Assembly: GCA_964035545.1 (NCBI GenBank)
Contig: OZ037770.1
Span: forward strand, 1,736,001-1,800,000
Direction: 5' to 3'
Source of the DNA: Bugula neritina
Taxonomy: Eukaryota > Animalia > Bryozoa
Length of the DNA: 64,000 nt
Position numbers and translations under genes: made by a program. The notes below the pieces were generated by a model that was not told the origin of the DNA, did not search any database, and worked only from the letters and a program-made list of their open reading frames with translations. Positions 40,790-49,309 of the stretch are shown here, piece by piece (position 1 is the first letter of the stretch; each line of letters begins with the position of its first letter).

Positions 40790-43056
40790 TTAGTCCACTT
40801 GATATTTAAGGGGATGGATGCATGCACAGCCTTCTTCGAGAGAGCACCAGCATGAAAGATTCCCGCAGCACTGTTCATTTGAGACGCAGAATTCTACAAA
40901 TTAAATATTGATACATGTATTGTAAGAACTCATATAGAAAGCAGCTATTATAGTCTAAGGGTTATACCATTGGCTTAGTAAACACAAAGCTATAGGTTCA
41001 AACCCCAACAAAGACCATTGGGGATGTTTAGAAAAACATCCAATCATAACTGTTTCTTTGCCGCATATGAATAAATCTTTAACCAGATTTAACAAAAACC
41101 TTTTCCATGCATGGGTGGAGAGCAGGGTTTTCTCACAGGGCTAGTGACAATAAACTTGCTTGAGTTTTTTTTATAACAGGCCAACAGAAAGACAGCTATA
41201 TATTCTATGAGAGAGTTGTGATAGAATTATTTTATATCTGTTGTGCATACCACATGCATGTAGATGACAGCAGACGATGTAACAAAGAGGAAAAATTAAG
41301 AGTTTATCTGGATTAAGGGATAAAGTTTGCTTACGATTTTTAGGACGACATTCTTGCGAACTTCTTTTTCTTCTTCTACAATATTTAAATAGACTTGCAA
41401 TATGTCATAATAGTATAATTGTTACGCTTATATACAGATGTGCTAAACATGCATGTTGTATGCTTTTCACACATATTTTGCAGTAATATACATATTATAT
41501 ATTATACATATTATATAATACACTTTAGGACTAAATTTAGATTTATATTGTTTAAAGAACAAGAGGAATGAAGATCTAGTGGCGAGAATTGTAGCCTTTG
41601 GGTAGGCATTGTTATAAGGATGATGTAACAATGAGTACCAAATTGATTTGTTTGGATAAAAAAACTAGGATATATAATTGTTTACGTACAGTCAAAAGCA
41701 ATTTTGTAAAATAAAATAAAATCTTGTTTTACATCTTGTTTTATCATAGTTCTTCAACAGTTTAAAACCGACTGATGAAATCACTAAATATTATTTAACA
41801 GAAGTAAATTGAATTTATCAAATTATTGAAGAAAAATTGATTAATCCAATCAAAAAACTTTTATAGTATTCAAAATAAATTAAATTCAAAGTGTTTTCTG
41901 CATGCATTTGCTGTTAATGAAATGAAATCAGTCTGATTGTATAAGATCCTATGCTTATATAATAGAACTTTAAAATGAGATGTAGTAAAGGAAACCAACG
42001 TTTATACCCGTCTTAAACTATATTTTGAATTACTCATATATGTGTACAGGCAAATCTTTAACATATTGTTACATAATCACTTATACATCATTGTAATGTG
42101 GTAGCTGTATATTTCTGATCCTTCAGAGATTACAATAAGTGTCATAATATATAGGGACTGTGTAAAATATATATGTACTTCAGTTTAAAAACAAAGATTC
42201 GCATTTTATATAGTCATACTATCACCAACCTACTATGTACCTAATGGAAAATAGTTTAGAAGCGTGAAATTATATGAGAAATGTCAGATGTGTGTCTGTA
42301 TTTAAATTTTGACAACTTTTGTTGAAAAAGATTAGGAAAAATGTCCTGTACAGTGTAATAAAAGATTTATACAAATACGTAATATTATTACATAATTTTG
42401 CATTCTAACCATTGAAGCAAAGATGTGCTGCTTAACAAAAGTTTGATTCAAATAAAGTGAGTCACATGTGACTCATGTTATTTAAAACAAACTTTCGTTA
42501 CGAGATTAAAAACAAAACATTATAGCTAACTATTCATTATATAGGTTACCTAACTATAATGTATAGGATTGTTATTGATATATCTAGTCAATCATGGCTG
42601 GTGTAAATTTATACTAACAAAATGGCAATATGTGATTATGATAATAAAGTTGCAATATTATGCGTAAATCATACCCAGAAAATATTTGTTGAGAAATTAG
42701 TGCAAACCAGTCGGGATGCTGCATGTTGTAAACTCTTTCTTCGTGCGCTTTAATCAGCCGATCCCTGTGAGCACGTGCAGCTTTAATCGCAGGATGTTCT
42801 GGTGCTGAGAATATATATATATATATATATATATATATATATATATATATATATATATATATATATATATATATATATATTATATATATATTATATATAT
42901 ATATATATATATATATAATATTACACTATATTGTTGAAGTACATGTTTGATATTACAAACTTCACATATAATTTTGAACTTACTGGTTGTCATCCCGGAA
43001 ACGTCATAAACAAATACTGAAAGTACGATCACCAAAGATAGAAGTAGAATCTTCAT
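40790..43056 (-). CDS. Secreted 8-Cys knottin prepropeptide, gene B, 115 aa
   Basis: Exons 43056-42984, 42804-42675, 41375-41335, 40893-40790 (phases 1,2,1). Protein: MKILLLSLVIVLSVFVYDVSGMTTTPEHPAIKAARAHRDRLIKAHEERVYNMQHPDWFALISQQIFS-G-RRKR-SSQECRPKNQFCVSNEQCCGNLSCWCSLEEGCACIHPLKYQVD*. Confidence 0.88.
40938..41172 (+). mobile_element. SINE family copy (gene B intron 3)
   Basis: Homologous to 34119-34330; B-box GGTTCAAACCC. Confidence 0.75.
42811..42918. repeat. (TA)n microsatellite in gene B intron 1
   Basis: Direct inspection. Confidence 0.95.
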
Positions 43057-44193
43057 GTTAGCAGGTGGTTGGCAGGACTTTGGTGTAGAATGTAGCACTG
43101 CGTTATACAGAGTGCTAAATGTCTACTCTGCTTTATATACTGCAATACATTCAATTTAGACAGCCAATCAAAAGCTTGTATGAGGGAACAGGTTACACTT
43201 AGTCAAAAAAAATGGTCCCATCTAAGAGTTGGCCATAACAAAGTGTGCGGCATTTTGAAAACTTGTGTTACAGCTATCAGCATGGAGGATTGGTTGAATT
43301 GATGAATTTTTTGTTTTGTGCGATGTTTTTTAATGAATATTTAACATCAATGAATTTACTTGTATAGCTTGCACAACTACAGCATAGTAAAATTTCTATT
43401 TTGAAGTTAGCTCATTTCTAATCAAATTTATGTAAATAAAACAGTCTACTTGTAACAACAACAAAAATTTTTACACATAAAACATGACACTAAATGCGCA
43501 ACTGCAACTATCCTTTAAGCTTCCACACTGCTTAAACACTTTGTTAGACTGTTTTAAGCAAAGCTGTAATTAACATCTTAAGTTCCAAACTATCAATTGT
43601 ACCCAGCTGGAGTTAAACCTCTCTTGTACTAGTACGCTACAATTATGAACAGTGTCTAAAGGCTATTACGTAAAAATAGTCCAACTACCACTGTGGGCAT
43701 GCTGGTTGAACAGCCCTCTAATTCGTATATTTAGTAGATGAGATTATTATTTACATGAAATTGTAAAGGAAAGCCACCTAAGTATTAGTTATATAGAAAG
43801 CTGATTATAGCTATAATATAAGATGCAGCTCGTTTCTTTATGTCTCTTATATAAATTATGGATTATTTCGGATGTTTTGTTCAACTTTATTACACCTACA
43901 AGTAGTAGGCCTAGTTTTTTTTACTTTTGACAGCTTTAATGACTTATATTTTTTGAGGGAAAGGGTTGACAACAAAGGATAATGTAAACTTATAACAATA
44001 AAGTATAAAAATATTCAAAATAATAATATAAGTTTTACAGTTAAACAAGATCAACATAAAAAGAAGCTATAGCAGATTCCTTGACCAAAATCTATAACGA
44101 AGAATTAGTATATATTTCAAACACATATAAGTTGCTTGATTAAGGGAATTCTACTAAAGCAATGTAATTCTTGCAAGAAAACACTTCTGGGTA

Positions 44194-48279: not shown

Positions 48280-48908
48280 ATATTACTAGCACTAGGGGGA
48301 AATGCCCCTAAAACCCATCTGAACAAATTGCTTTTAATTCAAAAACGCATTATTCACATTATTTTCCACAAATCACCTACTGAACACACGTCACCTCTAT
48401 TTATCAAAGCAGAAATTCTTCCTATTGATCTCTTGTATATCTACCGCCTATTTCTTCTTGGTCATTCAGCTTATTATACTCCATCTCACACCAAACAACC
48501 ACCAACTTACCTCACCAGACATTCTGAACTTTCCTTACCCTTACCTCCCTCTACCTCCGCAGCAGGTCATCGTCAAGTGTCCTACCAGATGTCTAGCAAT
48601 TGGAATAAGCTACCTCTGACTTTAAGACATCATTAAAGCTTTGCCACATTTAAAATAATTATTGTTGAAAAAGCACCTACTAAAATCTTTAACTTAATCT
48701 GAATAAATAGTTCCCACTATTTTTTCAACTGCCACTTGGGCCCCGCTCCTTGAATAGCTATGCTACTGAGCACATGGGCCCCCATCTTGACTTCGATTAA
48801 TATTATATATAAATTGAATTTAGCTCTTTTTGTGTTACTGTTGTATATTTGTATGTTTTTGTCCTTTTGTTTTTTTTGATGGAAATAAAGAAAACAAACA
48901 AACAAAAA
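48280..48908 (+). mobile_element. LINE (CR1/L2-like) 3' fragment in intron 2 of gene D
   Basis: ORF 48328-48636 (LLIQKRIIHIIF...HTSPLF...ILPIDLLY...WNKLPLTLR) resembles the C-terminus of CR1/L2-group ORF2. It is followed by a UTR-like segment and an (AAAC)-rich tail. Confidence 0.65.
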
Positions 48909-49309
48909 AGTCAATCATACCCATGGTAAAAATACTGGCTTATATCGAACCAATTAGGGTTCTCTATATTGTGAAGCATTTTTTCTTCTCTCTGCTTGGC
49001 TAAACTTCCGGGATGAGGTACAGCTGTCACAGATAGATGTTCTATTACAGCTGTGAAAATAAAATATTCATTTCTTGGAGCATTAATTGATTAAAACAAA
49101 ACTATTAGCTATTACTTGAAGTTTAATCACCAGTACAGTGAATGGTTGCATGACTTTTGGTAGGTTTGTAGCTACAGGTAGCAAAGGTGTTCAAGATTTA
49201 AATGACAACCAGAGTTTTAATACTTGCTTGCATGGGAAAACATATATAGGAATGTTATAGTAACAATTCATTAGCAAAACACTATCTATATATAAACTAT
49301 ATAGTCTTA

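Follow-up and report, generated by a model that had tools for sequence, protein, structure and literature searches.

A stretch of 64,000 nucleotides from the bryozoan Bugula neritina (contig OZ037770.1, positions 1736001-1800000, approximately 30% GC; hereafter the window) carries three tandem paralogues, B, C and D, all on the minus strand, that appear to encode secreted prepropeptides. Our analyses of their sequences point, as the single most likely reading, which we favor tentatively, to the release of the pro-region as a separate amidated helical peptide. This peptide would be a secreted signal or effector with its own sequence-specific role, and not only a helper of the disulfide-rich peptide (knottin) that follows it in B and C. 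A function independent of the knottin is favored because selection keeps the peptide in gene D, whose knottin cannot be translated, because in a sibling genome gene C retains its knottin while the core of its pro-region drifts, and because a neighboring gene, A, makes a related knottin without any equivalent of the pro-region exon. The invariant Gly-multibasic junction that ends the pro-region, and paralogue-specific tails that are conserved between orthologues, add to this reading.

Each of the three genes has four exons with canonical AG/GT borders. The signal peptide is encoded by exon 1, which has a phase-1 end, and the pro-region alone by exon 2, which stops in phase 2 after two bases of a Gly codon. 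In B and C, exon 3 contributes the last base of that codon, a [RK][RK]KR site and the first Cys (Cys1), and exon 4 the remainder of a knottin with eight Cys residues (C-C-CC-CxC-CxC). In gene B, exon 1 (42984..43056) holds the start codon, the signal peptide and the phase-1 donor; exon 2 (42675..42804) encodes PEHP...NMQHPDWF...IFS and bases 1 and 2 of the Gly codon; exon 3 (41335..41375) supplies the last base of that codon, an RRKR site and the start of the mature peptide with Cys1; and exon 4 (40790..40893) encodes Cys2 to Cys8 and the stop codon. The corresponding exons of gene C encode the signal peptide (45959..46031), the pro-region PEHP...NMENPNWF...YPGSA with the GG of the Gly codon (45440..45575), the KRKR site with Cys1 (44694..44743), and Cys2 to Cys8 with the stop codon (44194..44315). 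The signal peptides of B, C and D have, by inspection, a hydrophobic core and small residues at positions -3 and -1 (VSG, ASG and ASA), and the pro-peptides left after signal cleavage are predicted to be 46, 48 and 43 residues long, respectively. A long (TA)n microsatellite (42806-42920) adjoins the acceptor of B exon 2; it is also present in two of the contigs described below, L004 and L006, and these drafts are 1 nucleotide apart at the start of the exon.

Exon 2 occurs exactly three times in the assembly of 216,009,554 bases. A profile built from it yielded three matches among 1.84 billion proteins, all from Bugula, and the contigs behind them proved to be collinear copies of the B/C/D cluster. 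The only database relatives of the family are annotated as 'hypothetical protein EB796_005500 [Bugula neritina]' and are located in the draft genome GCA_010799875.2. Genes D, C and B are all on contig L004; B and A are on L006, a second haplotype that is 88-94% identical; and the JGI metagenome contig L005 covers D and part of C. In aligned introns and flanks, the window and the sibling sequence differ at 508 of 2610 sites (p = 0.195), which we used as a yardstick. At this distance, the source of the contigs is a sibling species or a very deep lineage inside 'B. neritina'. The published draft differs from the window assembly by about 20% in aligned introns, and its own two haplotype contigs are 6-12% apart, values that make it probable that the assemblies come from separate cryptic species within the B. 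neritina complex. Indels in the drafts (1 nucleotide in L004 and L006, deletions of 21-22 nucleotides in L005) lie in homopolymer or repeat contexts. They were considered as gene lesions and set aside as probable draft-assembly errors. Searches and structure predictions were run exon by exon, and exons were joined only for translation and for estimates of the ratio of nonsynonymous to synonymous rates (dN/dS, omega).

Gene D separates the peptide from the knottin. The initial annotation had every precursor, D included, yielding a knottin, a claim that fails for D, as the window holds no intact one. Its exon 1 (49877..49940) encodes a signal peptide that evolves fast relative to the sibling (omega about 1.2) and is still hydrophobic, and exon 2 (48921..49050) encodes a pro-region ending in NIENPNWFDISQYFYH, followed by the GG of the Gly codon. 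Exon 3 (47666..47722) encodes KRKR and a 14-residue tail and has lost Cys1 in the window. The remnant of exon 4 (47345..47434) lies in a frame different from that of exon 3, with the CC pair changed to CY and a 2-nucleotide insertion before the last CxC. D exon 3 measures 57 nucleotides in the window and 54 in L004 and L005, all multiples of three, compared with 41 in B and 50 in C, both of which leave a remainder of two. Splicing at its sole strong donor, G|GTAAGT, leaves a terminal TG (phase 2), which the first base of exon 4 completes to a TGA. The window, L004 and L005 all have exon 4 out of frame, and since this holds in all three genomes, the frame clash predates the species split. Two Cys codons of the D knottin are changed in L004 and none in L005. 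Alternative splicing that might restore the frame of exon 4, by other donors, by NAGNAG acceptors in exon 3 or by skipping of exon 3, was read by hand, and every variant ran into stop codons. A stop one base into the last exon is not expected to trigger nonsense-mediated decay.

The remaining open reading frame of D is intact and comprises the signal peptide, the pro-peptide, G-KRKR and a tail of 13-14 residues. The proportion of nonsynonymous sites that differ (pN) in exons 2 and 3 was 0.050, compared with the intron divergence of 0.195 (P = 2e-6). These exons carry 7 nonsynonymous and 10 synonymous changes, against 74.5% nonsynonymous changes expected from the empirical mutation spectrum (P = 0.004).

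Comparisons between orthologues showed that the pro-region and the knottin can evolve at quite different rates. Relative to the sibling, the B pro-region had an omega of 0.31 (pN 0.085) and the B mature knottin an omega of 0.10, with 30 of 33 exon-4 residues identical; the pro-region of D had an omega of 0.15. For C, omega was 0.82 over the whole pro-region, about 0.95 in the pro-core, where pN was 0.30, at or above the intron rate, 0.30 in the tail (pN 0.08) and 0.38 in the mature knottin. Thirteen of the 20 differences in the C pro-region could be polarized with B and D as outgroups, and all 13 were derived on the sibling branch and none on the window branch. The proportion of differing synonymous sites (pS) in the sibling C exon 2 was 0.31, no higher than in B or D. 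Because synonymous divergence is not raised, the pro-core changes in the sibling reflect fast or unconstrained protein evolution, and the idea that this exon was copied by conversion from a deeper paralogue is not supported. The tails next to the Gly differ among the paralogues yet are kept between orthologues, with 9 of 11 residues identical in C, 8 of 8 in D and 7 of 9 in B.

These values bear on two earlier claims. Purifying selection on the pro-region is borne out for B and D, and by the comparison of paralogues below, but not for the C pro-core, which is neutral in the sibling. The description of the knottins as hypervariable does not stand, as between orthologues their conservation equals or exceeds that of the pro-region. 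On these comparisons, the B and C knottins are old, stably diverged paralogues, and selection on the pro-peptide is uncoupled from that on the knottin.

Between B and C, 25 of 34 residues of exon 2 are identical over the segment T-PEHP...WF, as previously counted. All the synonymous codon pairs listed before (CCA/CCT, GCA/GCT, AGG/AGA, GAT/GAC, CGG/AGG, CTG/TTA, GAA/GAG, GTT/GTC and AAC/AAT) were found again, together with CCC/CCT and ACA/ACC. Over the 36 codons of the pro-core, the Nei-Gojobori method gave a pN of 0.17 and a saturated pS of 0.82 (Fisher test of pN versus pS, P = 1.5e-8). The non-Cys residues of the knottins gave a pN of 0.45-0.50 and a pS of 0.77. Their low identity, about one third, was correctly noted before, but the exact count is 8 of 23 rather than 6-7 of 22. 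Gene conversion, which would have lowered dS and had been named as a finding that would undo the argument, does not account for the likeness of B and C, because their synonymous sites are saturated. From these figures, the duplication is old and the pro-core is held by selection at the protein level. The signal peptide is less conserved between B and C than the pro-core, the tails share 2 of 11 residues, and the N-terminal helix is the most conserved part among the paralogues.

The claim that a Gly stands directly before a basic site was correct for B (RRKR), C (KRKR) and D (KRKR). An intron splits this Gly codon in all three genes (GG|A, GG|G and GG|A), and Gly plus a basic site also occurs in all the sibling copies (G-KKKR, G-KRKR and G-KRKR). 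The proposal that the pro-peptide is helical agrees with the AF2 model of a seven-sequence exon-2 alignment, which predicted helices at positions 4-28 and 32-41 with a mean pLDDT of 90. The predicted break between the helices falls at an invariant P-x-W turn, and the invariant positions of exon 2 (A8, L16, E21, P30 and W32) fit a small folded helical hairpin as modeled. Prediction of a complex between the B pro-peptide and the orthologous knottin returned a score of 0.00, a 'no answer' that counts neither way.

We propose that B, C and D form a Bugula-restricted tandem family of secreted prepropeptides, whose pro-peptide of 43-48 residues would fold as a helix, an [HN]P[DN]W turn and a second helix. 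A proprotein convertase of the furin/PC type would cut after the [RK][RK]KR site, a carboxypeptidase would trim the basic residues, and peptidylglycine alpha-amidating monooxygenase (PAM) would convert the exposed Gly into a C-terminal amide. Exons 3 and 4 of B and C would give a four-disulfide inhibitor-cystine-knot (ICK) peptide. Each B or C precursor would thus yield two products, a paralogue-specific knottin and a helical amidated peptide whose core is common to the paralogues and whose tail is particular to each. We infer cleavage, amidation, secretion and bioactivity of the pro-peptide from the sequences. The genome has exon matches above cut-off to Cu2_monoox_C (PF03712) and P_proprotein (PF01483); as PF03712 is common to DBH-type enzymes, the presence of the enzymes is only permissive. 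Amidated neuropeptides have been predicted in B. neritina (PMC4990251).

The explanation that ranks close behind, and which we regard as a serious possibility although a somewhat less probable one, is that the pro-region serves the biogenesis of the knottin as a cis-acting domain, in oxidative folding, export from the endoplasmic reticulum, granule sorting or latency, roles of the kind proposed for the pro-regions of conotoxins, and is an inert by-product once cleaved. Amidation would then be incidental, as for any Gly-terminated fragment in a PAM-containing compartment, and D would be a young pseudogene in which the conservation of exon 2 is left over from its past. This explanation fits a pro-core common to paralogues that would use the same cellular machinery, and it has precedent in Mytilus CRP-I and the conotoxins, where a conserved prepro-region beside a divergent knottin is the rule (PMC10138031), without a known peptide function. 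By analogy with these systems, a common biogenesis role would explain the conservation of the pro-core among old paralogues equally well, which weighs against an independent peptide, and several other observations do the same. The first G of the Gly codon is accounted for in part by splice donors, which prefer a G at exon position -1. The case from D depends on 17 substitutions and an inferred splice pattern, and the argument from uncoupled selection is built on few substitutions too. D exon 4 is not clearly neutral: its identity to the sibling is somewhat above that of the introns (0.88 versus 0.78-0.79; 11 of 88 positions mismatched, compared with the intron value of 0.195). Because this exon is more conserved than the introns, inactivation of the D knottin may be recent, or an isoform that we have not seen may exist. 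The elevated omega of the D signal peptide also agrees with decay of the gene. D exon 2 in L005 has a 22-nucleotide deletion; since C exon 1 in the same contig also has a hole, of 21 nucleotides, this is probably an assembly error, yet it could be real. Finally, given its 13 derived changes in the sibling species, the C pro-core is not indispensable. Against the biogenesis role stand the frame clash in D exon 3, which is older than the species split while exons 2 and 3 have kept a low pN, the sibling C knottin, which is conserved although its pro-core changes neutrally, and gene A, which makes a similar knottin without exon 2.

Two other explanations appear improbable. In one, only the C-terminal 19-21 residues, after EE[RK] and including NPxWF and the tail, would be the bioactive unit, released by monobasic cleavage, with the N-terminal helix as a spacer. 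The alignment places a basic residue at P6 (B and C) or at P4 and P6 (D) relative to the EER/EEK site, and between the C orthologues the tail is the best conserved part, with a lower pN than the core. This is hard to reconcile with the strong conservation of the N-terminal helix among the paralogues and with the divergence of the B and C tails, and monobasic cleavage is itself speculative. The least probable of the explanations, by a little, is a hormone-carrier pair in which the amidated peptide is the ligand and the Cys-rich domain binds or packages it, or the reverse. Vasopressin/oxytocin precursors have the order signal peptide, peptide with Gly and a basic site, Cys-rich domain. The B/C/D precursors likewise run from a signal peptide through a peptide bounded by the signal cleavage site on one side and by Gly and basic residues on the other to a disulfide-rich domain, and B. 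neritina has a vasopressin-type precursor (PMC4990251). Unlike the nine-residue disulfide ring of vasopressin, however, the B/C/D peptide is predicted to be helical and is several times longer, at 43-48 residues, the Cys-rich part of B and C is a 40-50-residue knottin, and the two systems are not homologous. Moreover, D retains the peptide without the knottin, and the paralogue knottins have diverged strongly while the peptide core has not, which argues against tight coevolution.

The independent-peptide reading can be taken further. In that case, D would be a living paralogue without a knottin, and selection would maintain it solely on account of the helix-turn-helix peptide with its terminal Gly. 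The pro-region would represent a new amidated peptide signal of bryozoans, used for example in larval settlement or zooid communication, and B and C would be dual-product precursors that co-release a peptide hormone and an ICK peptide. We consider this extended form a real possibility, though one of well below even probability.

The initial annotation called the arrangement of B, C and D an unusual two-component design, a description that does not hold up, as conserved prepro-regions with divergent knottins are already known from the conotoxins and Mytilus CRP-I (PMC10138031). Like Mytilus CRP-I and the Conus O-superfamily, the genes are lophotrochozoan, tandem and multi-exon, and they combine a signal peptide, a pro-region, a basic convertase site and a C-terminal ICK domain (PMC10138031). 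In those families, too, the prepro-region is conserved between paralogues and the mature knottins are very different, and members with no Cys or with degenerate frameworks exist. They differ in having no detectable sequence similarity to B, C and D. In the Bugula genes, a dedicated exon encodes the pro-region, whose terminal Gly is followed at once by a basic site of four residues, and the knottin of B and C is split over two exons and has eight Cys residues. The signal peptide of B and C, unlike theirs, is less conserved than the pro-core. The mature peptides of B and C are under purifying and not positive selection between orthologues, and the omega values for the two gave no sign of the diversifying selection that characterizes mature conotoxins and CRP-I.

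The frameworks are C-x6-C-x5-CC-x4-C-x-C-x5-C-x-C in knottin B and C-x5-C-x5-CC-x4-C-x-C-x6-C-x-C in knottin C. Both contain the six-core-Cys arrangement of the inhibitor cystine knot (C-C-CC-C-C), with loop lengths in the knottin range, and they resemble spider ICK toxins and arthropod agatoxin-like peptides (Pfam Toxin_12 and Toxin_9) in the pattern Cx5-6C...CC followed by CxC...CxC. Propeptides of spider toxins are acidic and end in ExxR; those of B, C and D end in Gly and a basic site such as KRKR instead. In AgRP and ASIP, a convertase separates an N-terminal pro-domain from a C-terminal cystine-knot domain, and activity of their own has been proposed for the N-terminal fragments. The end of the gene A knottin, CWCSIFNANCSCR, recalls the AgRP loop. 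The agouti domain has ten Cys residues with other spacing and no amidation signal, and B, C and D show no significant similarity to it: the ten-Cys pattern C-x6-C-x6-CC-x2-C-x2-C-x-C-x6-C-x-C-x6-C was not found in their eight-Cys frameworks, which lack the C-x2-C-x2-C segment.

Searches placed the family among the orphans. No exon-2 or exon-4 peptide matched Pfam, and the exon-4 peptides hit no family at E <= 10. In particular, they gave no significant sequence or profile match to the curated knottin families Toxin_12, Toxin_9, Conotoxin and Omega-toxin. The best sequence match of the knottin in the PDB was psalmotoxin-1, with a non-significant E value of 0.47. Its nearest neighbors by language model and by structure were theraphotoxins, and its atlas feature scores of 0.81-0.85 are leads only, being under the 0.9 line. 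The knottin half, which was searched by means of the database protein P0002, retrieved only itself in a word-index search. Exon 2 found no relatives when its alignment was scanned against JGI metagenomes, only low-complexity helical noise in a PDB profile search, and no usable match in the ESM Atlas. As far as these searches reach, the family is an orphan, without a Pfam match and without relatives outside Bugula.

Few phyla have been studied less than Bryozoa for peptide signaling and toxins, and the portion of the in-silico neuropeptide survey of B. neritina cited here mentions no ICK-knottin precursors (PMC4990251). The overall plan of B, C and D is of a known kind; the new element is a pro-peptide with an amidation signal and with selection separable from that on the knottin, including a paralogue that probably lacks a knottin. 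If the amidated product is real, this would be a peptide family specific to the lineage, in which D provides a natural separation-of-function allele, and a clear case of selection on the propeptide of a knottin precursor, a part usually ignored when conotoxin-like precursors are annotated. If the pro-region is a biogenesis domain only, the locus is still a useful small model, in which three old paralogues and a sibling species make it possible to study the differing rates of pro-domain and knottin evolution. It also serves as a warning that a conserved pro-region next to a divergent knottin among paralogues does not imply a hypervariable knottin.

A module of approximately 200 bp, comprising the promoter and 5′ untranslated region, is kept among B (43057..43260), C (46032..46235) and D (49941..50144), all on the minus strand, and in both species. 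It contains an inverted CCAAT box, TGATTGGCTAAA (ATTGGCT in B), a TATATAA element and, just before the ATG, an E-box-like CACCTG. The sharing of the module suggests that the three genes are co-regulated, and its retention in D adds to the case for an independent peptide.

Gene A (36087-37790, minus strand) lies downstream of B. Its three exons encode a signal peptide, a short DTT...TPNHL stretch, RVKRK and the eight-Cys knottin mentioned above; exon 2 has no counterpart in it, and RVKRK is not preceded by Gly. The last exon of its orthologue in L006 is 93% identical. Upstream of D, a Cys-rich open frame (55749-55845, minus strand) has 7 Cys in 32 residues in a different framework, CC...C...CC...C...C. 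Introns of D and C contain tRNA-like stretches of the GTGGTGTAATGGTTAGCAC... type (48100-48170 and 44460-44530, respectively). ARAGORN called no tRNA in them, and they are probably copies of a tRNA-derived short interspersed nuclear element; the copy in D sits in an insertion missing from the sibling species. Elsewhere on the same chromosome, two further knottin-type genes were observed, both on the minus strand. One, on L007, has a signal-peptide exon and a six-Cys exon (2801-2938 and 4742-4927). The other, on L008 (5025-5186 and 5429-5554), has a six-Cys exon with an open frame containing RYGR upstream of it.

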